From Dendrobates tinctorius (Eukaryota), in NCBI RefSeq assembly GCF_039654945.1, contig NW_027361707.1, positions 55,738,001 through 55,802,000 of the forward strand: a stretch of 64,000 bases of DNA, read 5' to 3'. A model generated the notes under the pieces. The model was not told the DNA's origin. It saw nothing but the letters and a program-made list of their open reading frames with translations, and searched no databases. This document shows, in pieces, positions 2,786-60,430 of this stretch. The first letter of the stretch is position 1; every line of letters begins with the position of its first letter. The translations under genes and the position numbers were made by a program.

Positions 2786-4404
<1,619 letters not shown>

Positions 4405-8417: not shown

Positions 8418-8512
8418 TTAAAAGAAGGAATGGCAGAGAGAGGATTTCATTTGTTGGCATGCTCCTCCAGTGACTGGTTGGCATGCTGGTGAACGTTAAA
8501 TGTGCAACGTTA

Positions 8513-8929
8513 AGGCCTCGTCACACACACCGAGTCCGCTAGCAATTTCGCCAGCGACATCGCTGTGCGTGACACATCAGCGACCGGCCCCCCCGCCGGG
8601 TATCGCTGATCATGCAGGAATGTCCTGGGCCGTTTTTTGATCGTTGCTCTCCCACTGGCCAGCACACATCGCTGCATGTGGCAGCAGGAGAGCAACAATC
8701 AGCGACGCTGCACACTGGTATCTAAGGTAAACAGCGGGTATCCAAGAGCCGCGCGGCTCATAGAAACCCACTGTTTACCTTAGATGCCAGCTTGCTCGCT
8801 GGTCCTGATCGCTGGAGGGGCTGTCTATGTGACAGCTAACCAGCAATCAGCCTAACAATGTCCCAGCGATCCCATCCATGTCGGATCGTTGGTGGGATCG
8901 TTGGGACATCGTTATGTGTAACGGGGCCT
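8513..8929. mobile_element. PIF/Harbinger-type MITE
   Basis: TIR AGGCCTCGTCACAC / GTGTAACGGGGCCT with TTA TSD on both sides. Same family as 1308-1703. Confidence 0.85.
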
Positions 8930-10214
8930 TTAGAGTCAGAGTTGGAAGATAGAAACTGTGACACAGAATTTAGTAGCCAAGTGAGAGGCCAAAGTAGATT
9001 TAGACAAATGAAAGCAGAGGACTGAGACCTCATTAAGCATTGATGAGGATGCTTTTAAGAGATAACGATGCTGGAATAAAGTGACTGTGTCTTGTAGTTG
9101 TAATGAGTGAAGACCAGTCTGCGGAGTCAAGAAAAAGTTGAGAGAGTTGTAAGAAACAGAGGGCACCTGGTGTACCTACAGCATGACTAATCAGGTCAGC
9201 CTTAATTGTTCCTGCAAATTTTCCCATTGTGAGATATTAGAAAAATGGTTTACAAGCACTAAATTACATTTTATAGACCCTATTACTGATTCAGTTGAGA
9301 GACTGCACACTTGCACACAGTAAGTATCATTTAGTTGAGTACAAAGTGTTTTATGTCACTTTACTAAACATTCCGGTAGAGCTCCATTAATTGGTTGTCC
9401 TGTCATATTCATCAAAGACTAACATTTTAGGACAATTCTTATCACCTATTGAGACTGATACCATTATTAAAGAATTGTTGATTATCGTTTGCTTTCTCAT
9501 TCCATTAACCCGTCCCTTAGTAAGTACAGAGCTACATCTACCTTTACCTACATGGTGTCTGATATTCGTATTACTTCTCGCACTGTGCAACCAATCAACT
9601 TAGTTGTTCAAAGCCCTTGAATTCGAGCAATTTATATTTTACATTTTGTCATTTCTCTCCCAATAAAGTTTATACAGTTTTGTGCGTGTTCTAATTTTTT
9701 TTATTGTAGTTGTGAAATACTTTTGAATTCTATCGGGAAGAAACATTCAAAACAAAATATAGTGATTATTAAACTCACAGCTCAGTAAATAACACCTAGC
9801 GGAGATTAATTCTTTCCAAATATGAAAAGCCCTCAAGGTTCAATAAACATAATTTGGTAATATAAAAAATGTAAAACTGCAGTATTAGCTTGGGCCGGGA
9901 TGTTTTGCTTGCATAGATCAGCAATTTTAAAGTTTAGCCAGAACAAATCTCAAATCAGCACACTCCTGTTGTCTTTGTAATATGGCTATAGTTTTAAGCC
10001 TTTGATTCAGTATTTCTATAACACGAATGCTTCAAACAAGAAATTGCCCATTAATTTCTAAAATAAACTTTATTTGGAGCATTTAAGTTGCCTTTCTTGA
10101 TACATCATAAAATGTACAGGTCTCTTGAAATGTTCTGCTGTTTGGATGTGAAAGGAAGAGAATAAGAAGCTCCTGTATGGACCTGTAATATGGCTATGGA
10201 CATGTTTTCAAACA

Positions 10215-10948: not shown

Positions 10949-12546
10949 TTATGTGTTTGTGAGATTGATGGGATATGGATTTCAGGGGTGCCAAAAAATC
11001 ACTCTAAGTTGTCCATGAAATTTAGATGCAAAGCTAGGGCATGCACCAATTGAATGCTTTACTAAAGACGAGGAAATGACTATACAAACTCAGTCAATCA
11101 GATCTTACAATTCCTTGTGGACACAATTACAAAATGTCAATAAATTATGTAAATGGAGTTAACCTACACTGTAAAGTAAATGTTAAACTGCAAAAACCTT
11201 GTGGTCTCCTGAGGTCAAGGAGAAAAAAAAGAAGCTGTGAAAAAACAGCTTTAGCCTCTTGGGTCAATGAGCACTTTGTAGAAATAAGCAATACCGCTTT
11301 CTTCAATGGACCGACTGGGTTTAAGCAAACCCAAATCAGCTCTGCTAGTGACAAATATCACTATAGGTAGTTGTTTTCCCCAGTAAATGAGATCCTATGA
11401 ATTCTCAAGCAATAGTAAAAAATAATCTATAAAATATTCAACAAAAAATTTTAAGGCGTAGATGTCTTCCACAGGTGTATATCTTTTTTGTCTAAATTTT
11501 TTTTTTGTCTAGCTAGTTATTACATTAGAGGAGTTGTTAACTACTCAAACAAGACCTTCTCAATTACATATCCTCACATGTAAAATACGTAAAACTAGGC
11601 TATATTCATCTCTGGTGCAAGCGCCATTCCAGCAACATTGGCACCAGGTCTGCTGGAACTTGGGAGATGTTGTTAGGTCACATGAATCTTGCCTCTAATC
11701 AGAAGCCACTAATAAGCTGCTTCACTCTCACTTCCTTCAGACAAAAGTGAAATCTGGAGGGGGTGAGAGATCATTAGAAATTCTTACTCCTTACAGATGT
11801 CAGTTTTGCCCAAAGGAAGTGAAAGTGAAGTGGCTCGTTAGCTGCTGTATGGCTGCAGAACTTAAGTGGCATAACATGATGCCAATGTCACTGGAATGGC
11901 AGGGATATCAGAGGTGAGTATAGGCTGATTCTATTTTAGAAGGGGGACTATGGTGATCGAGAATGTGTTATCCGACTGTAGTAAAAAACAAATTTATTAA
12001 TTCCATCTAATATACAAGCAAGCATAACCTAAAATAAAAACAGTGAAAAGATACAATGCAATAAGTAACTAAATAGTACTAAAACATGTAAAAAATAGGG
12101 CACTTAGTTGACACTCTTTTGATCATGAAAGACTGTAGCGCAAAACAGATATATTAATTCAATCTAATATACAGACGATGTAAATGTAACAGCATAACCA
12201 GCCTTAAACTATGCAAAATTTACCACTGTGGATCATGTTGAATGACAAGCTTCGTGTATCTTTAAATACTTTTGCATTGCTTTCTTGTTGAACATTGACT
12301 CATAGTAACTCCTTTCCCCCTAAAGCCTGATTTCACCTTCCTGACTAGGCCAATTTTTACAATTCTGACCACTATCAGTTTTTGAGGTCATAACTCTGAA
12401 ATTCTTCAATGGATCCCACTGATTCTGAGAATGTTTTCTCATGATGTATTGTACTTTATGATAGTGGTAAAATTTCTTTGCTATGACTTGCGTTTATTTG
12501 TGAATAAAGCAGAAATTTGGTGTAAATCTTTAACCTCTTCACGACC

Positions 12547-13185
12547 CATGACGCCTACGTAGGCGTCATGAAAAGTCGTGCCCAAACGACCTATGACGCC
12601 TACGTAGGCGTCATGCTATAAATAGCCCCCCCCTGCGGGTCGGGTGACTGGGGTCACTGAAAGGTCACCCGATCCGCACACAGAGAACACTCTCCAGCTA
12701 ATCCCAGGGGGTGTGGCTTAGCCCCCACGTGCCTACGATCACTCTGATTGGCTGTTAAAAGTGAAACAGCCAATCAGAGCGATTTGTAATATTTCACCAA
12801 TGAAACTTGGTGAAATATTACAATCCAGCCATGGCCGATGCTGCAATAGCATCGGACATGGCTGGACACCGACATCTGACCCCCCCACACCAACTGGCGG
12901 GGCCGATCGGCCCCCGCCACCGATGGACGGCGGCGATCGGTCGCCGCCATCATTATCTGCTCCCCCTCCCCTTCCTATCACTCCCTCCCACCTTCCGAGC
13001 CCCCTGGGACCTCCGATGGTGCTCCCGGTGTCCTGTCGTGGCTCCCGGCGTCCCGGCGTCCGGATCATGGGCGCCGCCATCTTGGAAAATGGTGGGCGCA
13101 TGCGCAGTGCATGAATTTGCCGGCTGCCCGTTCATTTTTCATTTTGATCACTGTGATACACTCTCACAGTGATCAAAATGAAAAA
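12547..13185 (+). promoter_or_regulatory. Palindrome/hairpin-rich, CpG-rich left end with promoter-like motifs (copy 1)
   Basis: 24-bp perfect palindrome CATGACGCCTACGTAGGCGTCATG (12547-12570, repeated at ~12593-12614), inverted CCAAT pair (~12745-12780), GCCGCCATCTTG (13073-13084, YY1-like) and GCGCATGCGC (13096-13105, NRF1-like). Function is inferred. Confidence 0.4.
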
Positions 13186-13264
13186 AAAAGTAAATACACC
13201 CCCCTTTTATCATCCCCATAGCCAGGCGCAAATAAAAAAATAAAAAAAATATTTTTTTTTCCAT

Positions 13265-13640
13265 TTAGGGTTCGAACTAGGGTTAGGGTTGGAATTAGGG
13301 TTATAGATAGGGTTAGGGTTAGAAATAGGGTTAGGGCTAGAATTAGGGTCAGGGTTCGAATTAGGGTTAGGGTTGGAATTAGGGTTAGGGTTGGAATTAG
13401 GGTTAGGGCTGGAATTAGGGTTAGGGCTGGAATTAGGGTTAGGGTTGGAATTAGGGTTAGGGCTGGAATTAGGGTTAGGGCTGGAATTAGGGTTAGGGCT
13501 GGGGTTAGGGTTAGGCTTGTAGTTAGGGTTAGAGTTGGGATTAGGGTTAGGGGTGTGTTGGCATTAGGGTTGTGGTTAGGGCTATTAATAGGGTTGGGTT
13601 AGGGTTAGGGGTGTGTTGGGGTTAGAGTCGGAGATAGAAT
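13265..13640 (+). repeat. Degenerate interstitial telomeric (TTAGGG)n array inside transposon copy 1
   Basis: Runs of TTAGGG with an 18-nt higher-order unit TTAGGGTTAGGG(C/T)TGGAA. Confidence 0.95.
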
Positions 13641-13644
13641 TGAG

Positions 13645-16600
13645 GTGTTTCCACTGCTTAGGCACATCACAGGGTCTCCGAACGCAACATGGCGCCACGA
13701 ATTATTCCAGCCAATTTTGCGTTCAAAATGTCAAACAGCGCTATCTCCATTCCGAGCCCTGACGTGTGCCCAAACAGTGGTTTACCCTCACATATTGGGT
13801 ATCAGCGTACTCAGGAAAAATTGCACAACAACTTTGGGGGTCTAATTTCTCCTGTTACCCTTGGGAAAATAAAAAACTGGGGGCTAAAAAAATGATTTTT
13901 GTGAAAAAAAATGATTTTTTTATTTTCACGGCTCTGAGTTATAAACTTCGGTGAAGCACTTGGGGGTTCAAAGTGCTCATCACACATCTAGATAAGTTCC
14001 TTGGGGGGTCTAGTTTCCAAAATGGGGTCACTTGTGGGGGGTTTCCACTGTTTAGGCACATCACGGGGTCTCCGAACGCGACATGGCGCCACGATTTATT
14101 CCAGCCAATTTTGCGTTCAAAATGTCAAACAGCGCTATCTCCATTCCGAGCCCTGACGTGTGCCCAAACAGTGGTTTACCCTCACATATGGGGTATCAGC
14201 GTACTCAGGAAAAATTGCACAACAACTTTGGGGTCTAATTTCTCCTGTTACCCTTGGGAAAATAAAAAACTGGGGGCTAAAAAAATGATTTTTGTGAAAA
14301 AAAATGATTTTTTTATTTTCATGGCTCTGAGTTATAAACTTCGGTGAAGCACTTGGGGGTTCAAAGTGTTCATCACACATCTAGATAAGTTCCTTGTGGG
14401 GGTCTAGTTTCCAAAATGGGGTCACTTGTGGGGGGTTTCCACTGTTTAGGCACATCATGGGGTCTCCGAACGCGACATGGCGCCACGATTTATTCCAGCC
14501 AATTTTGCATTCAAAATGTTAAACAGCACTCCCTCCATTCCGAGCCCCGACGTGTGCCCAAACAGTGGTTTACCCCCACATATGAGGTATCAGCGTACTC
14601 AGGAAAAATTGCACAACAACTTTGGGGGTCTAATATCTCCTGTTACCCTTGGGAAAATAAAAAATTGGGGGTTAAAAAAATGATTTTTGTGAAAAAAAAT
14701 GATTTTTTTATTTTCACAGCTCTGAGTTATAAACTTCGGTGAAGCATTTGGGGGTTCAAAGTGCTCACCACACATCTAGATAAGTTACTTGGGTGGTCTA
14801 GTTTCCAAAATGGGGTCACTTGTGGGGGGTTTCCACTGTGTAGGTACATCAGAGATTCTGCAAACGTAACATGACACCCGCAGACCATTCCATCAAGTTG
14901 GTATTTCAAAATGTCACTACTTCCCTTCCGAGCCCCGACGTGTGCCCAAACAGTGGTCCCTCCCCACATATTGGGTACCAGCGTACTCAGGACAAACTGG
15001 ACAACTACTTATGAGGTCCAATTTCTTCTGTTACCCTTGGGAATATAAAAGATTGCGGGCTAAAAAATCATTTTTTGAGGAAAAAAAAAGATTTTTTATT
15101 TTCACGGCTCTGCGTTATAAACTTCTGTGAAGCACTTGGGGGTTCAAAGTGCTCACCACACATCTAGATAAGTTCCTTGGGTGGTCTAGTTTCCAAAATG
15201 GGGTCACTTGTGGGGGGTTTCCACTGTTTAGGCACATCAGAGGCTCTGCAAACGTAACATGACGCCCGCAGACCATTCCATCAAGTCGGTATTTCAAAAC
15301 GCCACTACTTCCCTTCCAAGCCCCGACGTGTGCCCAAACAGTGGTCCCTCTCCACATATTGGGTACCAGCGTACTCAGGACAAACTGGACAACAACTTTT
15401 GGTGTCCAATTTCTCCTGTTACCATTGTGAAAATCAAAAATAGCAGGCTAAAAAATCATTTTTTGAGGAAAAAAAAATATTTTTATTTTCACAGCTCTGC
15501 GTTATACACTTCTGTAAAGCACCTGGGGGTTCAAAGTGCTCACTATGCATCTAGATAACTTCCTTAGGGGGTCTAGTTTCCAAAATGGGGTGATTTGTGA
15601 GGGAGCTCCAAAGTGTAGGCAGACAGGGCCTCTCCAAACACGACATGGTGTCCGCTAACGATTGGAGCTAATTTTCCATTCAAAAATGGCGCTCCTTCCC
15701 TTCTGAGCCCTGCCGTGCACCCAAACAGTGGTTCCCCACCACATATGGGGTGCCAGCGTACTCAGGACAAACTGAACAGCATCTTCAGCGGTCCAATTTA
15801 TCCTGTTACCCTTGTGAAAATAAAAAATAGCGGGCTAAAAAATCATTTTTGAGGAAAAAAAATGATTTTTTATTTTCATGGCTCTGCCTTTATAAACTTC
15901 TGTGAAGCACTTGGGGGTTCAAAGTGCTCACTACACATCTAGATAAGCTCCTTGGGGGGTCTAGTTTCCAAAATGGGGTCACTTGTGGGGGGTTTCTACT
16001 GTTTAGGCACATCAGGGGCTCTGCAAGCGCAACATGATGCCCGCAGAACATCCCATCAGTCTGCATTCCAAAATCGCGCTCCTTCCCTTCTGAGCTCTCC
16101 CATGCGCCCAAACAGTAGTTTCCCCTGACATATGGGGTATCGGTGTACTCAGGACAAATTACACAACAACGTTTGTGGTCCAATTTCTCCTGTTAGCCTT
16201 GTGAATATAAAATATAGCGGGCTAAAAAATCATTTTTGAGGAAAAAAAATTATGTTTTATTTTCACTGCTCTGCGTCATAAACTTCTGTGAAGCACTTGG
16301 GGGTTCAGTGTGCTCACCACACATCTACATAAGTTCCTTGGGTGGTCTAGTTTCCAAAATGGGGTCACTTGTGGGGGAGCTCCAATGTTTAGGTACACAG
16401 GGGCTCTCCAAACACGACATGGTGTCCACTAACGATTGGAGATAATTTTCCATTCAAAAAGTCAAATGGTGCTCCTTCCCTTCGGGACCCAGCCGAGTGC
16501 CCAAACAGTGGTTTATGACCACATATGAGGTATCGGTGCACTCAGGAGAAATTGCCCAACAAATTTTAGGATCCATTTTATCCCATTGCCCATGTGAAAA

Positions 16601-17060
16601 TGAAAAAACTGAGGCTAAAAGAAAATTTTTGTGAAAAAAAAGTCCTTTTTTTTACTGATCAATTTGTGAAGCACCTGGGGGTTCAAAGTGCTCACTATGC
16701 ATCTAGATAAGTTCCTTGGAGGGTCTAGTTTCCAAAATGGGGTCACGTGTGGGGGAGCTCCAATGTTTAGGCGCACAGGGACTCTCCAAACGCGACATGG
16801 CAACCGCTAAATATTCCAGCATATTTTCCATTCAAAAAGTCAAATGGTGCTCCTTCCATTCTGAGCTCTGCCGTGCACCCAAACAGTGGTTTATGACCAC
16901 ATATGATGTATCGGTGCACTCAGGAGAAATTGCCCAACAAATTTTAGGATCTATTTTATCCTGTTGCCCATGTGAAAATAAAAAATTGATGCTAAAAGCA
17001 AATTTTTGTTGGAAAAATTAAAATGTTCATTTTTTTCCTTCCACATTGCTTTAGTTGGTG
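13645..17060 (+). repeat. Tandem array of ~9 units of ~380-394 bp inside copy 1
   Basis: Unit starts at ~13647, 14041, 14435, 14829, 15217, 15603, 15993, 16378 and 16755. Each junction carries TCTAGTTTCCAAAATGGGGT. Confidence 0.95.
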
Positions 17061-18370
17061 TGAAGCACCTGAAGGGTTAATAATCTTCTTGAATGTAATT
17101 TTGAGTATCTTGAGGGGTGCAGTTTTTAGAATGGTGTCACTTTTGGGTATTTTCTACCATATAGACCCCTCAAAGTGACTTCAAATGTGAGGTGGTCCCT
17201 AAAAAAAATGGTTTTGTAAATTTTGTTGTAAAAATGAGAAATCGCTGGTCAACTTTTAACCCTTATAACTTCCCAACCCCAAAAAAAATTGTTTCCAAAA
17301 TTGTGCTGATGTAAAGTAGACATGTGGGAAATGTTATTTATTAACTATTTTGTGTCACATAACTCTCTGGTTTAACGGAATAAAAATTCAAAATGTGAAA
17401 ATTGCGAAATTTTCAAAATTTTCGCCAAATTTCCGTTTTTTTTCACAAATAAATGCAAATATTATCGACCTAAGTTTACCACTAACATGAAGCCCAATAT
17501 GTCACGAAAAAACATTCTCAGAATCGCTAGGATCCGTTGAAGCGTTCCTGAGTTATTACCTCATAAAGGGACACTGGTCAATATTGCCAAAAATGGCCAG
17601 GTCATTAACCCCTTCACGACCCATGACGCCTACGTAGGCGTCATGAAAAGTCATGCCCAAATGACCTATGACGCCTACGTAGGCGTCATGCTATAAATAG
17701 CCCCCCTGCGGGTCGGGTGACCAGGGTCACTGAAAGGTCACCCGACCCGCACACAAAGGACCCTTCAGAGTTAACACCTGGGGGTGTGGCTTAGCCCCCA
17801 CGTGCCTACGATCGCTCTGATTGGCTGTTAAAAGTGAAACTGCCAATCAGAGCGATTGTAATATTTCACCAATGAAAATTGGTGAAATATTACAATCCAG
17901 CCATGGCCGATGCTAAAGTAGCAACGGACATGGCAGGACACTGAGACCCGACCCCCCCCCACACCGACTGACGGCACCGATCGGCTGCCGCCACCGTCTG
18001 ACGGCACCGATCGGCAGCCGCCGTCATAATCTGCCCCCGCCTTCCCTCCGCCCCCCCAGCCCTCCGATCACCCCTCCGATCACCCCTCCGATCACCCACT
18101 CTCACCCTCCTTTGTGCCTCCGACCTCCCGCTATACGTCCCGGTGTCCCGCCGTCCAGCGTCATGGGCGCCGCCATCTTGCAAGATGGCGGGCGCATGCG
18201 CAGTGCACCGAATCGAATCTGCAAGGCTGCAGATTCATTTATTTTGATCACTATGATAAACTTTCATAGAGATCAAAATAAAAGAAAAGTAAATCACCGC
18301 CCCCCTTATCACCCCCATAGGTAAGGACAAATAATAAAATAAAAAAAATATATATTTTTTTCTTTTTCCA

Positions 18371-18745
18371 TTAGGGTTAGGTCCAGGGCTAGGGTTAGAG
18401 TTAGGGTTAGGGCTAGGGCTAGGGTTAGGGTTAGGGTTAGGGCTAGGGTTAGGGCTAGGGTTGGAATTAGGGTTAGGGTTAGAAATAGGGTTGAGGTTGG
18501 ACTAAGGGTTAGGGTTGGACTAAGGGTTAGGGTTGGACTTAGGGTTAGGGTTGGACTTAGGGTTAGGGTTGGAATTGGGATTAGGGTTGGCTTGGGTTTG
18601 GGATTACGGTTAGGCTTGTGGTTAGGGTTAGAGTTGGGATTTCGTTAGGGGTGTGTTGGGATTAGGGTTGTGGTTAGGGTTATGATTAGGGTTGGGATTA
18701 GGGTTAGGGGTGTGTTGGGGTTAGGGTTGCAGATAGAATTGAGGG
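18371..18745 (+). repeat. Degenerate interstitial telomeric (TTAGGG)n array inside transposon copy 2
   Basis: TTAGGG/CTAGGG runs and a TTAGGGTTGGAC variant. The 3' degenerate tail aligns with that of 13265-13640. Confidence 0.95.
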
Positions 18746-18746
18746 G

Positions 18747-21390
18747 TTTCCACTGTTTAGGCACATCACAGGGTCTCCAAACGTGACATGGAGCCACCAT
18801 TTATTCCAGCCAATTTTGCGTTCAAAAAGTCAAACGGTGCTCCCTCCATTTCGAGCCCCGACGTGTGCCCAAGCAGTGGTGTACCCCCACTTATGGGGTA
18901 TCAGCGCACTCAGGAAAAATTGCACAACAATTTGGCCATCTAATTTCTCCTGTTACCCTTGGGAAAATAAAAAAATGGGGACTAAAATAATTATTTTTGT
19001 GGAAAAAAAAGATTTTTTATTTTCACGGTTCTGCGTTATAAACTTCTGTGAAGTACTTGGAGGTTCAACGTGCTCACCACACATCTAGATAAGTTCCTTG
19101 GGGGGTTTAGTTTCCAAAATGGGGTCACTTGTGGGGAGTTTCCACTGTTTAGGTACATCAGGGACACTGCAAACGTAACATGACGCCCACAGACCATTCC
19201 ATCAAGTCTTCACTTCAAAGCATCACTACTTCCCTTCCGAGCCCCAACGTGTGCCCAAACAGGGGTCCCCCCCACTTATGGGGTACCAGCGTACTCAGGA
19301 CACACTGGACAACAACTTTTGGGATCCAATTTATCCTGTTACCCTTGTGAAAATAAAAAATAGTGGACTAAAAATCATTTTTTGAGGAAAAAAAATATTT
19401 TTTATTTTCACGGCTCTGCGTTATAAACTTCTGTGAAGCACTTGGGGGTTCAAAGTGCTCACCACACATCTAGATTAGTTCCTTGGGTGATCTAGTTTCC
19501 AAAATGGGGTCACTCGTGGGGGGTTTGCACTGTTTAGGTACATCAGGGGCTCTGCAAACGTAACATGACGCCCGCAGACCATTCCATCAAGTCGGCATTT
19601 CAAAACATCACTACTTCCCTTCTGAGCCCCAACGTGTGCCCAAACAGTGGTCCTCCCCACATATGGGGTACCAGCGTACTCAGGACAAGCTGGACAACAA
19701 CTTTTGGGGTCCAATTTATCCTGTTACCTTTGTGAAAATAAAAAATAGCAGGCTAAAAATTTATTTTTTGAGGAAAAAAAATATTTTTATTTTAACGGCT
19801 CTGCGTTATAAACTTCTGTGTAGCACCTGGGGGTTCAAAGTGCTCAGTATGCATCTAGATAAGTTCCTTAGGGGGTCTAGTGTCCAAAATGGGGTCATTT
19901 GTGGGGGAGCTCCAAAGTTTACGCACACAGGGGCTCTGCAAACACGACATGGTGTCCGCTAACGATTGGAGCTAATTTTCCATTCAAAAAGTCAAATGAC
20001 GCTCCTTCCCTTCTGAGCCATGCCGTGCGCTCAAACAGTGGTTTCCCCCCACATATGGGGTACCAGTGTACTCAGAACAAACTGGACAACAACTTTTGGA
20101 GTCCAATTTATCCTGTTACCCTTGGGAAAATAAAAAATAGCGGGCTAAAAAATCATTTTTGAGGAAAAAAAAATATTTTTTTATTTTCATGGCTCTGCAT
20201 TTATAAACTTCTGTGAAGCACTTGGGGATTCAGAGTGCTCACTACACATCTAGATAAGCTCCTTGGGGTTCTAGTTTCCAAAATGGGGTCACTTGTGGGG
20301 GTTTCTACTGTTTAGACACACAGGGGCTCTGCAAACGCAACATGACGCCCGCAGAACATTCCATCAAAGTCTGCATTCCAAAATGGCGCTCCTTCCCTTC
20401 TGAGCTCTCCCGTGTGCCCAAACAGTGGTTTCCCCCCACATATGGGGTATCGGCGTACTGAGAACACATTGCACAGCAACTTTTGTGGTTCAATTTCTCC
20501 TGTTAGCCATGTGAAAATAAAAAATAGCGGGCTAAAAAATCTTTTTTGAGGAAAAAAAAAAAAAATTTTTATTTTCACTGCTCTGCGTTATAAACTTCTG
20601 TGAAGCACTTGGGGGTTCAAAGTGCTCAGCACACATCTAGATAAGTTCCTTCGGGGGTCTAGTTTCCAAAATGGGGTCACTTGTGGGGGAGCTCCAATGT
20701 TTAGGCACACAGGGGCTCTCCAAATGCGACATGGTGTCCGCTAACGATTGGAGCTAATTTTCCAATCAAAAAGTGACATGGCGCTCCTTCCCTTCGGGGC
20801 CCTGCGGTGCGCCCAAACAGTGGTTTATGACCACATATGAGATATTGATGTACTCAGGAGAAATTGCCCAACAAATTTTAGGATCCATTTTATCCTGTTG
20901 CCCATGTGAAAATGAAAAAACTGAGGCTAAATAAAATTTTTGTGAAAAAAAAAGTACTTTTTTTTTTACAGATCAATTTATGAAGCACCTGGGGGTTCAA
21001 AGTGCATACTATGCATCTAGATAAGTTCCTTGGAGGGTCTAGTTTCCAAAATGGGGTCACTTGGGGGGGAGCTCCAATGTTTAGGCACACAGGTACTCTT
21101 CAAACGCGACATGGCAACCGCTTAATATTCCAGCATATTTTACATTCAAAAAGTAGAATGGCGCTCCTTGCCTTCTGAGCCCTGCCGTGCGCCCAAACAG
21201 TGGTTTATGACAACATATGAGGTATCGGTGTACTCAGGAGAAATTGCCCAACAAATTTTAGGATACATTTTATCCTGCTACCCATGTGAAAATGAAAAAA
21301 CTGATGCTAAAAGAAAATTTTGATTGGAAAAATTAAATTGTCCATTTTTTCATTCCATGTTGCTTTAGTTCCTGTGAAGCACCTGAAGGG
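18747..21390 (+). repeat. Tandem array of ~7 units of ~385-390 bp inside copy 2
   Basis: Unit starts at ~18747, 19138, 19523, 19908, 20300, 20690 and 21070. Confidence 0.95.
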
Positions 21391-24300
21391 TTAATAATCT
21401 TCATGAATGTAGTTTTGAGTAGCTTGAGGGGTTCAGTTTTTAGAATGGTGACACTTTTGGGTATTTTCTGCCATATAGACCCCTCAAAGTGACTTCAAAT
21501 GTGAGGTGGTCCCTAAAAAAAAATGGTTTTGTAAATTTTGTTGTAAAAATGAGAAATCGCTGGTCAACTTTTAACCCTTATAACTTCCTAACGAAAAAAA
21601 ATGTTGTTTCCAATATTGTGCTGATGTAAAGTAGACATGTGGGAAATGTTATTTATTAACTATTTTGTGTCATTTTTATTCTGGTTTAACAGAATAAAAA
21701 TTCAAAATTTGAAAATTGCAAAATTTTCGCCAAATTTCCATTTTTTCACAAATAAATGCAAAAATTATCGACCTAAATTTACCACTATCATGAAGCCCAA
21801 TATGTCACGAAAAAACAGTCTCAGAATCGCTAGGATGCGTTGAAGCGTTCCTGAGTTACTACCTCATAAAGGGACATTGGTCAAAATTGCTAAAAATGGC
21901 CTGGTCATTAAGGTCAAAATAGGCTGGGTCATGAAGGGGTTAAGGTCAAAATAGGCTGGGCCATGAAGGGGTTAAAAATGCAATTTTCAAACTTTTAATT
22001 TTTATGCCCTTAAATCAGAGCGTCATATTGCCCAAAATAGTTAATAAATAATATTTCCCATATGTCTACTTAACATCAGCGCAATCTTTGAAACATAATT
22101 TTTTTGTTAGTAAGATATAAGGGTTAAAATTTGACCATCATTTTCTCATTTTTACAACAAAATTTTCAAATCCATTTTTTTAGGGATCACCTCACATTTG
22201 AAGTGACTTTGAGGGGTTTATATGATGGAAAATACCCAAAAGTGACATCATTTTAAAAACTGCACCCCTCAAGGTACGCAAAACCACATTCAAGTAGTTT
22301 GTTAACTCTTCAGGTGCTTCACCGGAATTTTTGGAATGTGGAAGAAAAAAATAAGCATTTACTTTTCTTTCACAAAAATTTTCACTTAGACCTTTTTTTA
22401 TTTTTGCAAGGGTAACAGGAGAAAGTGGACCATACAGTTTGTTGTGCAATTTCTCCTGAGCATGCTGATATCCCAAATGTGGGGGAAATCCACTGTTTGA
22501 GCACATGACAGGGCTGGGAAGGGAAAGAGCGCCATTTCACTTTCTGAATGTAAAATTTGCTGGCATAATTAGCAGACACCATGTCATGTTTGGAGAGCCC
22601 CTGATGTGCCTAAACAGTGCAAACCCCCAACAAATGACACCATTTTGGAAAATAGACCTCTTAGGGAACCTATCTAGATGTGTATTGAGCACCTTGAACT
22701 CACAAGTGCTTCACTGAAGTTTATAACGTAATGCCGTGAAAATAAAAAAATAACATTTTTCCCAGACAAATCTTTTTTAGCTCCAAATTTTGCATTTTCA
22801 TAAGGGTAACAGGAGAAAGTGCTTCATACAATTTGTTGTACAACTTCTCCTGAGTATGCAGATACCCAATATGTGGAGGAAAACAACTGTATGTGTGCAT
22901 GGCAGAGCTTGGAAAGGAAGGAACGCCGTTTGACTTTTTGAATGTAAAATTTGCTGGAATAATTAGCGGATGCCATGTCACGTTTGGAGAGCTGCTGATG
23001 TGCCTTAAACAGTGGAAACCCCCAACAAGTGAAACAATTTTGGAAACTAGAGAACTTATCTAAATTTTTATTGAGCACCTTGAACCCACATGTGCTTCAC
23101 AGAAATTTATAACGTTAAGCCGTTAAAATAAAAAGATCACATTTTTCTTGGGTAAATCTTTTTAGCTCCAAATTTTGTATTTTCACAAGGGTAACAGAAA
23201 AATATTGCGCCCAAAATTTGTTGTGCAACATCTCCCGATAGCTCATATGTCATCAAAAACTACTTTTGAGGCACAGTGCAATGCTCAAAACAGAAGAAGC
23301 GCCACATTATAGTACAGATTTTGCTCCACTTGTTTGAGGGTGCCATGTTACAATGGCAGAGTCTCTCATTTGCCAACACAGCAGAAATCTCCATATGTGA
23401 CCCCATTTTACAAACTAAACCTCTCAATGAATTCATCTAGGGGTGCAGTGATTATATTAACACCACAGGTGTGTTACAGACTTTTATACCATTGTGCAGT
23501 GAAGATAAAATAATGTCCATTTTTACCACCAAGATTGTGTGTTAGCCCCAAGTTTTTAATTTTTATACTGGGAAATGGGCAAAAATGGCACCAAAATTTA
23601 TCATTTATCCCACAATTACTACTGAATATGGCAATACCCCATATGTGGCTGTGCAGTACTACTTAGCCATATGGAGAGACTCTGGATGGACGAAATGCTA
23701 TATGCCTCCTAGAAGGCAGATATTCCAAGAATAGTTTGTGGATTTAATATAAAGAGCCCCTAAGTGAGAGAAAAGCAGGATCCCCCCTCAAATGACTTTA
23801 CGTTGGAAATTATAACCCTTTGGGAATTTAACTACAGATGTAGTGACAATTTTCTATAGGTGTTTTCCAGAAACAAGCAGCAGTGGATGTTGCTGAGCGA
23901 AAATTGCAAACTGCCATTGTAGTAACCAGCACATTATGCCCAGCTCATGTTTCTGGAGACACACACCCGTATGTTAGGTGGGCTTTCATCACTACAGAAA
24001 TGCCAAACATGTGGGCGCTAAATGTGGTTTAGGCACGCTGGGGCTGAGAAGGCAGGGAGGCATTTGGATTTGGGAGCGGAGAATTTGCTAAATTTCTTTT
24101 GAGAAATGAGAAGCCATTTTGCTTTTCCAGAGCCTTTGTGCTACCAGTAACGTGGAAGCCCTCTATATTTCCGCTAACAGGTGATGGACCTGAGTAGGGA
24201 CTAGCTTTTCTTGTGGATTGAGTGTAAGCTTTTATTGGGAACATTTTACATTACATTACGGATCGCATTTATCCGGTGCTATACGCTGAGCACTTACATT

Positions 24301-24802
24301 TCAGTTTCCATCTAAATCTCCAAGTAATGTGACAGATGGAACCTCCAAAGTATCCATTCACTATAATGAGGAAGCAGAGTTACTCTGGACTCCATCTGGC
24401 TTATCTTGAACAGTGTCCTTCTTTTCAGAAGAACACAAAACTGTAGCCGATGGCACTTTTATGGAATCCTTAAAAGATAGACACTGCCGGATCAAAGGTC
24501 TTATGGCATCCACAGTGTCTCTATCTGCCTCATTATAGGGAATCTTCCACTGGGGCTCTGTCTGTATCACGTATTACAGAGACTTACACTGAAACCCCGA
24601 TGTAAGCGCTCAGCGTAGAGCGCAGTATATATGTGCGCCGAGCCTTACTGCTATCTTTGGGAGACAGTAGGTGAAGAATTGGTTTCATTTATTTTTTACA
24701 CTGTTCCTCATGCGGTATAAATGATTAGGTGGCTTTATTTTTATACAAGATTTATAATCGGGTTTTTATTTTTGACTTCCGTGATACACTAAAAGACACC
24801 CA

Positions 24803-25228
24803 GGCTACTTTCACACTTGCGTTTTTTTGCGCTGCACACCGTGTGCAGTGCAAACGCACATAAAAAACACATCATGCGTTTGTGTGCGTTTTTTGTGGGT
24901 TTGGGTGCGTTTTTTAAAAAAAAGCATGCTTTTTTGCGCATACGTGCGCATTACCATGCGCACGTATGTGCACCCATAGACTAGAATGGGTGTTTGGGTG
25001 AAAAAAAACGCATTGCGTGCGCATGCGTTTTTTTGGGGCAAATCGGGCGCACAAAAAATGCAACAGGATGCATTTTGTGCGCCTGAGTGCGCACTACAAA
25101 AAAACGCATGTGCATACAAACGCGTACAAACGCATGTGTATACGCACCCATGTAAAGCATAGGAAAAAACGCATGCTTTTTTTGCGCAAAAAAACAGCGC
25201 AAAAAAAAACGCAAGTGTGAAACCAGCC
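24803..25228. mobile_element. PIF/Harbinger-type MITE nested in the outer piggyBac-like element
   Basis: TIR GGCTACTTTCACACTTGCGTTTTTTT / AAAAAAACGCAAGTGTGAAACCAGCC followed by TAA. Internal AAAACGCA repeats. Confidence 0.75.
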
Positions 25229-27433
25229 TAATTATTGCGAAAACTAGTTTTTGCATCACCATATTTGGAGAACTATAATTTTTCCTTATTTCTGCCGACA
25301 GAGTCATGATATGGCTTGTTTTTTTGCGGGACGAGCTGATGTTTTCATTGTTTTTTTTATAACATCTCGCATGTGGTAAAATTGGTAAGACTGCTTTATT
25401 CTTTGGGTCAGTACAATTACAATGATACCCAGTTTATATAGTTTTTTATGTTTTGGGGCTTTTACACAATAAAAACTATTTTATAGAAAAAATAATTATT
25501 TTTGCATTGTTTTATTCTGACAGCTATAACTTTTTTTTCCGCTGATGGAGCTGTATAGCTGTATGGCGGCTTGATTTTTGCAGGACAAGATGACCATTTC
25601 TATTTGCATTTGTCATTTTGTCTTTTTGATCGCATTTTATTGCACTTTTTGTTTGGCGGTATGATGATAAAGCATTGTTTTTTCACGCGGTTTTTACTTA
25701 TTTTTTCATGTTTTTCACTGAAGGGGTTACATATGTACTTTTATTGTTTGGTTTTTTTATATAAATAAATGTATTTATTGGAAAAATATTTGTTTCTTTT
25801 TTATTTATTTGGTGATTTTTGAACATTTTTTTACACTTTTTAATTTTTTTAACTTTTTTACATTGGGTCATCCTGGGACATCACTTTATAGTGTCAGATC
25901 ACTCGTCTGATACTCTGCACTGCAGAGTATTTAATCAGACAGCATCTATCAGGCAAGGAAAGAGGCATGTCAGCATCTGCTCTCATCAGGAGCTCTCATG
26001 CCACCTTCCCGGCAGAACTCTGAAGGACCCCGTGGCCATCTTGCGGTAAGTGGGTCTCCATGGAGATCATTAGGGCAATGGGATCGCATCACGTTTTCCT
26101 GATGGAATCATGCAGGGACTTCGTTCCCTGCGCGATGCTACTCTATGCTGCTGGTTAAATACCCACGATTGGTGCTAGCACCATTCATGGGCGCTGTGGC
26201 AGGGTATCAGATCTCACACAGAGCTGAAACTTGCACCTGATTGCTTCGGCGCTGAGCATGAGTCCGTGCCATCGTGCCACCGTACATATACTTCTCTTTG
26301 CAGGAACTCAGCTCCCACAGAGCATGCCCATGTCGGGAAGGAGTTAAGTCACATCCAAACAAGATAAACCGCAGCACCCCATAAAGCCACCCCAACATTT
26401 GAAGTGAATCACATTGTGTTAAACAGAAAAAAATAAATAGACCTAAGCCAGATTTTTGGGGGTCTAAAAATTACAATATAAGCTAAAATTTGCCAAAAGC
26501 TGGTGAATTTTCTAACAAAGTTTAGGCACACTCATAATATGAAATCTGATTATTTATTTTTATGCCAGTTTTTGGGTCCATAAGGTTTTGTTTTAACTCA
26601 GTATGCTCTGGGTATAATGTTATTGTTGTCTTTTTTTCCAATGCCCATCTGTATATTAAAATTTGTAAAAAGAATGCATGTGCAAGATAACAAATTAACA
26701 ATACTGCTACAAATAAAATAAAAACACATAGAAACACATTACTTGCCTAAATAACATTTTTAATGAATTTTTTTCCTGCTTTTAAAAAAAACAAAAAACT
26801 ATCAATTGTGGATGAAGTCTGTATTCAAAGTCTTGTTTTAGAATTTTTCATTTTCGATTCTACATACTATATATAAAATATAACTGATGCACTGATGTTA
26901 ATCACAGCAGGGGCAGACATGCCATTGATGCAATCTGTGCAGCCGCACATGGGCCCAAAACGTAGGAGGCCCATTTCATCCTACAAAGCAAGTGGAATTG
27001 TGATTTATAACGACTATTGGACTATAGTGGGCCCATACATTGTTCTTGTAACAGGGGCCCTCATCTATCTGTGTCTTCCAGTAATGCAAAGTGAGGGTAA
27101 TGATATCAAACCATGTAAGGGTCATAATGCCTATTTGGCGTTGATGTTAAAAATTATAGAATATATTAGTCGGTTATTAATTTTGTATATGGGCTAATGC
27201 AAATGTAATAAATCACGCTGATGAGAATTGTTAGTACTCGCATATTGTCCTTTTTTTGTAAGAAAGCAAATTCTATTCATCAGGTTCTAGCATTTTGTGA
27301 CTAACTTGTAAAGACCCCTATTAACTTAATTCTTATGCTTTTATTAATTTTATTAACTTAATTCTTATACTTTTATTAACTATAATTAAAATCCAGACCG
27401 ATAACACAAATGTAATCACGCTGATGTAAAACA

Positions 27434-38971: not shown

Positions 38972-40577
38972 CAGTGGGGAAAAAAAGTATTTAGTCAGTC
39001 AGCAATAGTGCAAGTTCCACCACTTAAAAAGATGAGAGGCGTCTGTAATTTACATCATAGGTAGACCTCAACTATGGGAGACAAACTGAGAAAAAAAAAT
39101 CCAGAAAATCACATTGTCTGTTTTTTTTTCATTTTATTTGCATATTATGGTGGAAAATAAGTATTTGGTCAGAAACAAGCAATCAAGATTTCTGACTCTC
39201 ACAGACCTGTAACTTCTTCTTTAAGAGTCTCCTCTTTCCTCCACTCATTACCTGTAGTAATGGCACCTGTTTAAACTTGTTATCAGTATAAAAAGACACC
39301 TGTGCACACTCTCAAACAGTCTGACTCCAAACTCCACTATGGTGAAGACCAAAGAGCTGTCAAAGGACACCAGAAACAAAATTGTAGCCCTGCACCAGGC
39401 TGGGAAGACTGAATCTGCAATAGCCAACCAGCTTGGAGTGAAGAAATCAACTGTGGGAGCAATAATTAGAAAATGGAAGACATACAAGACCACTGATAAT
39501 CTCCCTCGATCTGGTGCTCCACGCAAAATCCCACCCCGTGGGGTCAGAATGATCACAAGAACGGTGAGCAAAAATCCCAGAACCACGCGGGGGGACCTAG
39601 TGAACGAACTGCAGAGAGCTGGGACCAATGTAACAAGGCCTACCATAAGTAACACACTACGCCACCATGGACTCAGATCCTGCAGTGCCAGACGTGTCCC
39701 ACTGCTTAAGCCTGTACATGTCCGGGCCCGTCTGAAGTTTGCTAGAGAGCATTTGGATGATCCAGAGGAGTTTTGGGAGAATGTCCTATGGTCTGATGAA
39801 ACCAAACTGGAACTGTTTGGTAGAAACACAACTTGTCGTGTTTGGAGGAAAAAGAATACTGAGTTGCATCCATCAAACACCATACCTACTGTAAAGCATG
39901 GTGGTGGAAACATCATGCTTTGGGGCTGTTTCTCTGCAAAGGGGCCAGGACGACTGATCCGGGTACATGAAAGAATGAATGGGGCCATGTATCGTGAGAT
40001 TTTGAGTGCAAACCTCCTTCCATCAGCAAGGGCATTGAAGATGAAACGTGGCTGGGTCTTTCAACATGACAATGATCCAAAGCACACCGCCAGGGCAGCG
40101 AAGGAGTGGCTTCGTAAGAAGCATTTCAAGGTCCTGGAGTGGCCTAGCCAGTCTCCAGATCTCAACCCTATAGAAAACCTTTGGAGGGAGTTGAAAGTCC
40201 GTGTTGCCAAGCGAAAAGCCCAAAACATCACTGCTCTAGAGGAGATCTGCATGGAGGAATGGGCCAACATACCAACAACAGTGTGTGGCAACCTTGTGAA
40301 GACTTACAGAAAACGTTTGACCTCTGTCATTGCCAACAAAGGATATATCACAAAGTATTGAGATGAAATTTTGTTTCTGACCAAATACTTATTTTCCACC
40401 ATAATATGCAAATAAAATGAAAAAAAAACAGACAATGTGATTTTCTGGATTTTTTTTTCTCAGTTTGTCTCCCATAGTTGAGGTCTACCTATGATGTAAA
40501 TTACAGACGCCTCTCATCTTTTTAAGTGGTGGAACTTGCACTATTGCTGACTGACTAAATACTTTTTTTCCCCACTG
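38972..40577 (+). mobile_element. Intact Tc1/mariner transposon (1606 bp)
   Basis: TA TSDs (38970-38971, 40578-40579). ~207-bp TIRs begin CAGTGGGGAAAAAAAGTATTTAGTCAG and look identical by eye. Confidence 0.97.
39339..40361 (+). CDS. Tc1-family DD34E transposase, 340 aa, uninterrupted
   Basis: N-terminal HTH ([12 protein letters not shown]...RSGAPRKI), [15 protein letters not shown] and [11 protein letters not shown], with 34 residues between the second D and E. Ends KGYITKY. Confidence 0.97.
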
Positions 40578-46344: not shown

Positions 46345-49300
46345 TCAGAGGAAGAGGAGGACAAAAGCGAGGCAGTTTTCTGGGGAAGGAGGGACAAAAT
46401 CCTTTGCAACCCATGCATGGTTCATTTTAATGAAGGTTAGATCATCAACATTTTTGGTCGACAGACGGGTCCTTTTTTCTGTCAGGATTGTTCCAGCAGC
46501 ACTGAAGACTCTTTCAGATAACACACTAGCAGCAGGGCAAGCAAGCTCCTGTAAGGCATATTGTGCCAATTCAGGCCAGGCGTCCAGTTTAGAGGCCCAA
46601 TAGTCAAAGGGGAATGACTTGTGAGGGAGAGCATTGATATGGGAGGAGAAGTAGTTTGTAACCATATTTGACAACTGCCTCCTGACACTTTTAATCGATG
46701 CCGTATTAGCAGTCGTGTGAGCGGTACTTGAGAAATCATTCCACAACATGGTCATTAATCCCCTGTCTCCACTGTCACTTCAGCTGTGTGCACCACGAAC
46801 ACCTCTTCCATTGTGCCTACTACGGCTCGTGGGAGAAGCAGCACCGCTGCTGTGTGCTGGGAAAGCCTCAAACAAATGGTTTACCAGAGTTGCTTGTTTG
46901 TTAGCCAATATTATCTCTAGGTTCTCCTGTGGCATGATGTTGTGTAATTTGCCTTTGTAGCATGGATCGAGGATGCTGGCCAGCCATTAGTCGTCATCTC
47001 TCATCATTTTGGAAATGTGGGGGTTCCTTTTTTGGATCCGCAAGGCATAATCGCACATGTGGGCCAATGTTCCAGGTGTCAATGATGCACTGCCAGTGGT
47101 GGGTGGAGGAGCACTTTCTGGCAAATCCACATCCCTACAGTCACGCACAAACACTGTAACTGACCTTGGAACGCCAACATTTTCTCTTGCCCCCTGAGAA
47201 GCATCCTCCTGCCCAAAATAATCATCCTCCTCATCCTCCTCCTCTTCCTCTTCTTCCTCCACCTCATCCAGGACAGTTCCCTTACCAGACAATGGCTGAC
47301 TGTCATCAAGGCTTTCATCCTCCTCCTCTGCAGACGCCTGATCCTTAATATGTGTCAAACTTTGCATGAGCAGACGCATAAGTGGGATGCTCATGCTTAT
47401 GATGGTGTCATCTGCGCTAACCAGCCGTGTGCATTCCTCAAAACACTGAAGGACTTTACAGAGGTCTTTCAGCTTTGACCACTGCACACCCGACAATTCC
47501 ATGTCTTCCCTCAAACTACCTGCCCGTGTATCCTCCCACAAATGCATTTCAGCCTGCCTCTGTTCGCACAGCCTCTCAACCATGTGCAGGGTGGAGTTCC
47601 ACCTTGTTGCAACATCTATGATTAGGCGGTGCTTGGGGAGGTGGAGCAATCGCTGCGGCTTCTGCATACAACTGGAGTGTACGGCCGAGCGACGGATGTG
47701 CGAGTACAGTCTTCGATCCTTATGGAGCAGGGATGTTAACGCCGGATAAATTTTAGGGAAGCACTGCACCACCAGGTTCAATGTGTGAACCAGGCAAGGT
47801 ATGTGTGTGAGGTTTGCACAGGCTACGGCTGCCACAAAATTACGGCCGTTATCACTGACTACCTTGCCTGCCTCAAGATGTAGACTGCCCGGCTATGACT
47901 CTGTTTGTCGCAGCAAGCAGTCGGCCAGTACCTCCGCGATGTGTCTGTTGTCGCCCAAAGGCATCATCTTTAACACAGCCTGCTGACGCTTACCACTAGC
48001 TGTTCCATAGTGGGACACCTCGTGTGCAACACTGCCAGCTGCGGATGGAGTGCTCGTGCGACTGCGCTCTGTGGATGAGCTTTTGCTGATAAAGGAAGAG
48101 GAGGATCGAAAGCCTACAGCCAACTGTTTCCTAAACCGTGGGCTAGGCAGCACTGTTCCACTGCCGCTGTCTTAAGTGGAGTCTGCATCCACCACATTAA
48201 CTCAGTGCGCAGTGATGGACACGTAACGGCCCTGGCCATGCCTGCTGGTCCATGCATCTATTGTGAGGTGCACCTTTCCACTCACTGACTGTTTTAGTGC
48301 AATAACAATGCGGTCTTTCACATGCTGGTGAAGGGCAGGGATGGCTTTTTGAGAAAAGAAGTGCCGACTGGGTAGGTCATAGCGTGGGACAGCATAGGCC
48401 ATGAGGTCGCGGAAAGCTTCGCTTTCAACCAAACGGTAGGGCATCATCTCTAATGAGATTAGTTTGGCAATGTAGGCATTCAAACCAAGTGTACACGGAT
48501 GAGAGGATGAGTACTTTCTTGTCCTACTCAGAGTGTCTGGTAGGGTGAGCTGGACTGGAGAGCTGCATATGGGGGAAGTAGCGGTGGACCGGATGGAGTG
48601 AGAGGGGGTTGGTGATGGTATTGGTAGTGATGGCCTAGATTCAGTGTTGTGTTGCAAAACCATTGTGATTCCCTGAGTGGTTTGGCCTTACGACAACACC
48701 TCCACATTAAGTGCTGGTGGTGTGCTTAACGGTGGCGGTGGCCTTACAGTTGGGGAAGCGATGGAGCATTGCTGGCTACCTTCACTCGGAGAGGTTTTGC
48801 AGTCCGTCCACGCTTGCAAGTGCATGTTGATTAAATGTCTAAGCATGCAACTGGTATTCAAATTTCTGAGTTGTTTACCTTGGCTAAAGGTCCTTCTGCA
48901 CTTCTTACAGGTAACCTTTGCCTCATCAGTAGGATTTTGGACAATGAAGTGCCACACTGCACTCTTCCTACTATGGTATACATTTTCTGGCCTTGCACGC
49001 TGTGCTAAGTTGACCATCAGGCCAAGCTGTCCTGCAACTCTTTTAGTTTTTGGTCCATGTTTTGGACAGCTATGAGCCTGCCAGATAACCTGCCTGCTGC
49101 GGATCCTTCTCCTTTTCTGAACTTTTGCCAGCGCCACCCTTCTCCCCCAATGGATGCCAATCCGGGTCAAGAACTGGGTCATCCATCACCTCCTCTTCAA
49201 AGTCATCTGCACCTTCCTCTTTACCTTCTTCTGTATCACCATGTAGGTGGTATAGTATGTGGGAAGGGACACCTGAGTTTCATCAGGGTCAGATTCTGGG

Positions 49301-59995: not shown

Positions 59996-60430
59996 AGGGA
60001 ATCTGTCACCGGAAATTTGCGGGCTATGTAAATGCCCTGCATCCGGTCCGATGTTTCTTCTTTTTTTTCCACCCCATCCGTGGCCACCGACCGTGATATT
60101 TTCCGGAATTAGAGTAGTTCTCCTTCATATTTCGCGCGTGCGCAAAGCAATCTTGCCTTGCGCACGCACAGTATGCTTTGCCCAACTGTGGGCAAAGCCA
60201 AAAATCATTCCTGCGCATGTGCTGGTCCACTATGTCCCGGAACACAGCGAAATACTTTCGGGACAGAGTGTACCGGCGCATGCGCAGTAATGATTTTCGG
60301 CTTTGCCCGCAGTTGGACAAAGCATACTGCGCGTGTGCAAGGCAAGTTTGCTTTGCGCACTTGCGAAATATGGAGAACTACTCTAATTCCAGAAAATATC
60401 ACGGAGAGCAGCCACGGATGGGGTGGAGAA
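59996..60430. mobile_element. T2/Kolobok-type MITE fragment with a ~175-bp-arm internal palindrome
   Basis: TTAA-AGGGAATCTGTCACC start. 60069-60240 is inverted relative to 60255-60426. Confidence 0.7.

Follow-up and report, generated by a model that had tools for sequence, protein, structure and literature searches.

A CpG-rich cassette precedes a TTAGGG-type array in the window, which is the whole 64,000-nt stretch of Dendrobates tinctorius DNA that was analysed. This cassette is the left terminal region, or head, of a TTAA-flanked non-coding transposon, and it is found twice (copy 1, 12534-13264; copy 2, 17609-18370, + strand). On the sequence evidence, we consider it rather probable that the cassette is a modular left-end cis-regulatory region of a non-autonomous piggyBac-like transposon, with a relic or accessory promoter that would be mostly silent. 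A promoter reading of the cassette is plausible in its geometry, and the promoter is a predicted one. A dedicated role in producing telomeric repeat RNA (TERRA) is not indicated.

Copy 1 of the element spans 12534-21971 and copy 2 spans 17609-21939. TTAA is present on both sides of each copy (12530-12533 and 21972-21975 for copy 1; 17605-17608 and 21940-21943 for copy 2). The target-site duplication of copy 1 and its 14-nt terminal inverted repeat (TIR), which begins CCYC, occupy 12530-12547 on the + strand. The same terminus is seen at 17605-17622, and in inverted form at 21926-21943 and 21958-21975. Thus, TTAA-flanked matches to the 14-nt repeat lie at 12530, 17605, 21943 and 21975, so that both ends of both copies carry the terminus, and the TIRs begin with CCC and end with GGG. 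Copy 2 was inserted in a TTAA located 28 nt inside the right end of copy 1, resulting in a doubled terminus. Both copies are in turn nested in a third, related and inverted element, the tail and satellite of which are seen at 12342-12533 and 21980-23563. The order within each copy is head, TTAGGG-type array, 388-nt satellite (8.6 units in copy 1 and 6.4 units in copy 2) and A/T-rich tail. The setting is interstitial: a transposon nested in a transposon, flanked by 12 kb and 42 kb of other sequence, and not beside a terminal telomere.

ORF, Pfam and Rfam scans found no conserved ORF, Pfam domain or Rfam family in the element. The element has no transposase, the piggyBac transposase domain was absent from all ten window ORFs that were scanned, and no autonomous partner was seen in the 64-kb window. 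Coding capacity of the CpG tract was rejected, as the ORFs there differ between copies and have no Pfam match. A known RNA family was also rejected, and the only miRNA-like matches were sub-threshold and caused by hairpins. The TTAA, the termini and the subterminal palindromes point to a non-autonomous, piggyBac-like TTAA DNA transposon, a superfamily assignment that is not proven since Kolobok elements likewise target TTAA.

The CRD of the piggyBac transposase binds a palindromic 19-bp subterminal repeat 3 bp from the TIR, as well as a left-internal site (PMC5861402). Palindromic subterminal repeats are common among piggyBac-like elements (PMC5381638). The frog element resembles Trichoplusia ni piggyBac and piggyBac-like elements in its TTAA duplication, TIRs of the form CCC...GGG, palindrome beside the 5' TIR and asymmetric ends (PMC5861402, PMC5381638). 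Unlike piggyBac, it has no transposase gene, its head is much longer and consists of a chain of many palindromes, and its body is made of telomere-type repeats and the 388-nt satellite. The binding motif also differs from the TGCGT...ACGCA of piggyBac.

The series of motifs that the earlier note had listed for the two heads was recovered in full, at the stated positions and in the same order in both copies, by direct reading and by alignment of the heads. The first are perfect 22-nt TGACG-containing palindromes (12548-12569 and 12593-12614; in copy 2, 17623-17644 and 17668-17689), four matches versus 0.00 expected. Taken as 12547-12570 and 12592-12615, they form a 23-nt inverted pair 23 nt apart (12547-12615) that begins at the last base of the TIR. 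Two further motifs add to that list: a TATA-like TATAAATA follows at 12617-12624 on the + strand and is kept in copy 2, and an E-box (CACGTG) at 12726 lies ahead of the listed inverted CCAAT pair, ATTGG at 12747-12751 and CCAAT at 12770-12774, both with good NF-Y flanks in copy 1. The NF-Y-like pair is held in a hairpin with a stem of 19-23 bp, and together with the E-box it occupies 12726-12783. Further to the right is a hypervariable, C-rich CpG tract (12867-13050, + strand) with 30-nt x2 units, each having a CGATCG-centred palindrome. Identity of the tract between the copies is 69%, and family members differ in its length. The 30-nt x2 repeats are located at 12893-12951 and 17962-18022, and their palindrome arms differ among units and copies while staying largely complementary. 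The last part of the series before the array is a conserved core at 13066-13111. It consists of a YY1-like 12-mer, GCCGCCATCTTG, at 13073-13084, a decayed inverted partner at 13085-13097 and a palindromic NRF1-like 10-mer, GCGCATGCGC, at 13096-13105. In copy 2 the partner is intact, forming a 20-nt palindromic double YY1-like site at 18171-18190, and the NRF1-like 10-mer is at 18192-18201.

The matches were compared with 20,000 first-order Markov sequences having the head's own composition. The NRF1 10-mer occurred in 0.08% of them, the YY1 11-mer in 0.045%, two NF-Y sites in 1% and the E-box in 12.6%. The NRF1 and YY1 matches occurred together in 0 of the 20,000. The two copies are homologous, so the motif set counts as one independent occurrence. 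The CRE/ATF reading of the TGACG palindromes was rejected: the full CRE, TGACGTCA, is absent from the head, which holds half-sites only, the palindromes abut the TIR, and they show a paired change between subfamilies. For CTCF, the simple core pattern had no match in the head, while the exact NRF1 10-mer is present. A third exact GCGCATGCGC is seen at 60276-60285, at the centre of another palindromic repeat (60000-60400) with long inverted arms. Thus, unrelated repeat families of the D. tinctorius genome also carry NRF1-like cores.

The modular nature of the head becomes clear from a related, simpler copy at 1-665 on the minus strand, which has TTAA and a similar terminus. In its head (440-665), the TIR and an inverted motif pair come first, then the E-box/CCAAT hairpin, and the 388-nt satellite begins immediately behind it. 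Of the parts found in the two larger heads, this variant has neither the TATA-like box nor any of the hairpins at 12634-12678 and 12784-12866, and it has no CpG tract, YY1/NRF1 core or TTAGGG array. Since only satellite lies past its E-box/CCAAT hairpin, 12784-13640 is a subfamily-specific module. In addition, the E-box/CCAAT module is not tied to the array, because it precedes the satellite in a copy without TTAGGG. Between the subfamilies, the terminus is 77% identical and the E-box/CCAAT hairpin 94%, in a comparison based on two full copies and one partial relative, with family-wide conservation resting on short contigs.

These two levels of conservation suggest different partners for the two parts of the head. 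The motif pair beside the TIR of the simple variant differs from TGACG on both arms, yet the arms stay complementary. Because the TGACG pair abuts the TIR and co-varies as an inverted pair between subfamilies, it is a better fit to predicted transposase-binding subterminal repeats than to CRE sites. The terminus and the TGACG palindromes may co-evolve with a transposase, while host factors that do not change, such as NF-Y and USF, may have kept the E-box/CCAAT module constant. The 5' terminal repeat of piggyBac has promoter activity (PMC1919496), so the E-box/CCAAT module is most simply a relic of an internal transposase promoter. The left end of the frog element is like the T. ni 5' end in this respect, although the promoter of the frog head is a predicted one. 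The "promoter-like CpG cassette" of the earlier note is thus upheld in part. The cassette is CpG-island-like and its YY1, NRF1, NF-Y and E-box matches are non-random, but its TGACG sites are better taken as transposase sites, and the CCAAT/E-box module is family-wide.

Contigs of four public runs from two coded organisms were searched for the head, with a query that reached 31 nt into the array. These contigs show presence and variants, and not transcript starts or strand; their summed depth was not taken as copy number or expression. The segments 12533-12865 and 13051-13235 were present in 4/4 runs at >=85% identity, and 12866-13050 hardly at all. The YY1/NRF1 block was found in contigs of all four runs. 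Several variant joints skip 87-219 nt of the CpG tract, all ending at 13060-13066. In one contig the NRF1 block is connected back to 12784, and in another 12756 is followed directly by the satellite. As the joints keep the boundary at 13060-13066, the YY1/NRF1 core is a conserved unit with a fixed left edge in a C-rich tract of variable length. The inverted host-element tail at 12311-12532 belongs to a repeat found in far more contigs, and with far higher summed depth, than the head (4/4 runs). Loose contig ends at this repeat show TTAA and CCCCTT-type termini of further relatives. In metagenome and viral contigs, the YY1/NRF1 pattern had no match; the CCAAT hairpin and the 23-nt palindrome had none in viral contigs. 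The 23-nt palindrome has one exact match in a metagenome contig (MDSQ01004866.1, L001:369-391), where the flanks are unrelated and no long ORF is nearby. This contig looks eukaryotic, and the shared palindrome may be a common protein-binding motif or part of another transposon family.

An inverted-repeat search revealed that each head is a series of at least ten abutting or near-abutting palindromes. Hairpins run without a gap through 12738-12783, 12784-12823 and 12824-12866; the last two (12784-12866) begin the subfamily-specific module, and the breakpoint 12783/12784 is seen both in the simple variant and in one contig joint. Hairpin H3 at 12634-12678 has a stem of 15-16 bp. Another at 13135-13185 has a 22-bp stem, and copy 2 has a paired change on both of its arms. 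When folded as single-stranded DNA, the head has an energy of -196 kcal/mol versus -96 +/- 5.6 in shuffles (z = -18). When the window was divided into 638 overlapping 300-nt segments and these were ordered by local hairpin energy, the two heads came out at ranks 1 and 3-6. The segments 24801-25300 and 8501-9000 also have very high local hairpin energy, the former with z of about -4 after GC correction.

This organization raises the alternative that the head was selected, or made by mutation, as a string of hairpins or cruciforms, which would serve as dimer sites for transposition or as small-RNA precursors. The transcription factor-like motifs would then be by-products of GC-rich palindromes. 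In fact, most of the listed motifs are inside a palindrome, including the CCAAT pair, the double YY1, NRF1 and TGACG sites; the exceptions are the E-box and the TATA-like box. Three palindromes (12634-12678, 12824-12866 and 13135-13185) contain no recognised motif. Both between units and between copies, the arms vary together, and the majority letters of the contigs restore pairing at 12649, 12673, 12741 and 13093, where the majority letter C rebuilds the double YY1 site in copy 1. However, the full-length YY1 11-mer and NRF1 10-mer match their consensus exactly, each at a chance of <0.1%, and the NF-Y sites have good flanks. Furthermore, conservation between subfamilies is far higher for the E-box/CCAAT module than for the terminus, which fits an unchanging host factor and not a co-evolving transposase. 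Internal hairpins are also not known to be required by cut-and-paste TTAA transposons. A purely structural origin of the head is thus unlikely, with a minor but real share of the probability.

The added module could also have a different history. In this case, 12784-13640, or at least the array junction, would be a true subtelomere-telomere junction, or a transposon break healed by telomerase, that was later mobilised by a simpler satellite-bearing element. The absence of the module from the simple variant and the recurrence of the 12783/12784 breakpoint in a contig joint agree with such a capture. The TTAGGG strand also points, 5' to 3', away from the head, as it would where an end has been healed, and the CpG tract has short tandem repeats, as do subtelomeric CpG islands. 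Telomerase healing and mobile-element spread have both been proposed as origins of interstitial repeats (PMC6410037; PMC6803351). On the other hand, the repeats next to the head are the more regular ones and those on the far side the more decayed, the opposite of the usual proximal-degenerate pattern, and deletion could just as well have given rise to the simple variant. Capture of a chromosome end is rather improbable as the explanation of the cassette, but as an origin of 12784-13640 it can coexist with the other readings.

The composition of the head is that of a CpG island. The GC content of 12600-13134 is 0.60 with a CpG observed/expected ratio (o/e) of 0.81, and the corresponding tract of copy 2 has values of 0.60 and 0.90, whereas the o/e of the whole window is 0.49. 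By the criteria of >200 nt, GC >= 0.5 and o/e >= 0.6, 12501-13200 and 17551-18300 are CpG islands, and they are the two longest stretches of this grade in the window. The GC skew of the + strand switches at the YY1/NRF1 core, from -0.28 (copy 1) and -0.39 (copy 2) on the left to about +0.8 on the right, in the array. Bidirectional CpG-island promoters typically show a skew that is positive along the direction of transcription to either side. The palindromic double YY1 and palindromic NRF1 sites suggest a core that would face both ways. Thus, the YY1/NRF1 core carries the sequence signature, and the signature only, of a methylation-sensitive bidirectional CpG-island core promoter.

CpG sites have been lost unevenly between the two copies: 9/15 (60%) at 13051-13262, 30/51 (52-63%) in samples of the satellite and 3/19 (16%) in the left 333 nt of the head. 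With 60% lost beside the core, as in the body of the element, the core flanks decay like methylated repeat DNA. This decay is suggestive of methylation, although it is confounded by selection acting on master copies and by the variable tract aligning poorly. Similarly, such selection, and not an unmethylated state, could be behind the retention of CpG in the leftmost 333 nt.

The degenerate TTAGGG array (13265-13640, + strand) has an 18-nt higher-order unit in copy 1, and its 3' part is common to copy 2. It begins 160 nt past the NRF1-like site with its G-rich strand on +, in accordance with the spacing of about 160 bp given in the earlier note. The same note proposed that this end of the element mimics a subtelomere. 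The resemblance is real in that a CpG-rich tract lies upstream of TTAGGG with the G-rich strand as sense, but the locus is interstitial, inside nested transposons. As the G-rich strand lies downstream in the same orientation, UUAGGG-type repeats would be part of a + strand transcript. The array is decayed, however, with roughly 1/3 of the hexamers in the 18-nt unit being non-canonical. Directly before it is an A/T-rich palindromic tract (13231-13264, + strand) with AATAAA at 13231 and 13239, which is kept in copy 2 (18333 and 18338). Two AATAAA signals, shared by both copies, come 26-34 nt ahead of the G/T-rich array. AATAAA at such a distance before G/T-rich sequence is the usual geometry of a poly(A) site. 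The tract would thus argue against read-through into the array.

Our preferred reading, a modular left end with a relic or accessory promoter, would assign these parts as follows. The 14-nt TIR and the two TGACG palindromes would be the part recognised by the transposase. The E-box and the double-CCAAT hairpin would be a family-wide host-factor module, most likely left over from the internal promoter of a former transposase gene. One subfamily would then have added the module from 12784, which comprises two hairpins, the CpG tract, the YY1/NRF1 core, the strong hairpin, the AATAAA tract and the array. An unmethylated copy could start RNA in both directions from the YY1/NRF1 core; on the right, the AATAAA signals would have to be read through before the RNA got to the array. 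For most copies, a methylated and silent state is probable.

The layout of the module invites comparison with telomeres. TERRA starts in subtelomeric CpG islands and is promoted by NRF1, which acts on TERRA promoters and the binding of which is blocked by methylation (PMC6600276). In human, more than 100 intrachromosomal TERRA-like promoters have been described in a 2025 preprint (bioRxiv 10.1101/2025.05.15.654290); some are beside interstitial repeats, the repeats are transcribed, and the promoters spread by segmental duplication. Interstitial telomeric repeats are transcribed in plants too, and their spread by mobile elements has been proposed (PMC6410037; PMC6803351). The frog cassette is like the human TERRA CpG-island promoters in its CpG-rich, partly tandem-repeated tract, its NRF1-type site upstream of TTAGGG and the strand that would give UUAGGG, a likeness of layout. 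A further study has reportedly found that NRF1 promotes TERRA. The cassette shares its interstitial location with the human TERRA-like promoters beside interstitial repeats. It differs from them in that the frog copies spread by transposition, AATAAA signals intervene, the array is decayed and transcription is hypothetical.

According to the strongest form of this comparison, the transposon would be a mobile TERRA-like unit, in which an active promoter in the head sends + transcripts into the array, and many interstitial copies supply UUAGGG-type RNA with a role at telomeres or in chromatin. Although the geometry and strand are correct, a CpG island and an NRF1-like site lie 160 nt upstream of the array, the YY1/NRF1 core is conserved across the family in contigs, the array has a positive GC skew of the kind expected to favour G-rich RNA, and human promoters of this type adjoin transcribed interstitial repeats (bioRxiv 10.1101/2025.05.15.654290), we regard such a unit as very improbable, given the poly(A)-site geometry before the array, the decay of the array, the 60% CpG loss beside a core for the methylation-sensitive NRF1 (PMC6600276) and the related copies and variant contigs without array or core. 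There is likewise a slim chance that the transposon packages a bidirectional CpG promoter of the NRF1/YY1 type together with the array, and that demethylation in the germline or early embryo would fire the apparently numerous interstitial copies, adding UUAGGG-type RNA to the TERRA pool. If this were true, TERRA-like loci would be spread by transposition rather than by segmental duplication.

In frogs, the usual interpretation of interstitial telomeric repeats is that they are scars left where chromosomes fused or breaks were repaired. The present transposon family shows such repeats travelling inside a transposon. UUAGGG RNA from internal loci would not be new in itself, because TERRA-like promoters beside transcribed interstitial repeats are known in human and such transcription is known in plants. 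What would be new is one transposon carrying the promoter and the telomere-type array together. If the array does travel with its own promoter, a genome could contain a very large number of methylation-controlled loci able to give telomere-repeat RNA, which would bear on how the TERRA pool is measured and interpreted outside mammals. If it does not, the cassette is still a transposon end of stacked palindromes that combines transposase sites with host-factor sites. The cassette also serves as a warning that promoter-like strings of motifs in repeats need RNA evidence.

Frog MITEs with internal tandem repeats include Xstir/Xmix of Xenopus and the T2 MITEs. Like these satellite-bearing MITEs, the present element is a non-autonomous DNA transposon that carries satellites. 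It is also similar to other NRF1/YY1-core repeats of the D. tinctorius genome, in which an NRF1-like palindrome is centred in a palindromic element (e.g., at 60276). Unlike our element, neither the frog MITEs nor the NRF1-core repeats are described with a telomere-type array downstream of a CpG core.

The window also contains transposon-derived ORFs of other types. Transposase ORFs of the Tc1/Sleeping Beauty type, with HTH_SB, HTH_Tnp_Tc3_2 and DDE_3 domains, are found at 39339-40361 (+) and 3600-4067 (-). The former sits between inverted microsatellite and GC-rich repeat blocks at 37.2-41.3 kb. An ORF at 48688-49182 (-) has a BED zinc finger (E = 1.7e-10) and is probably part of a hAT-type element.
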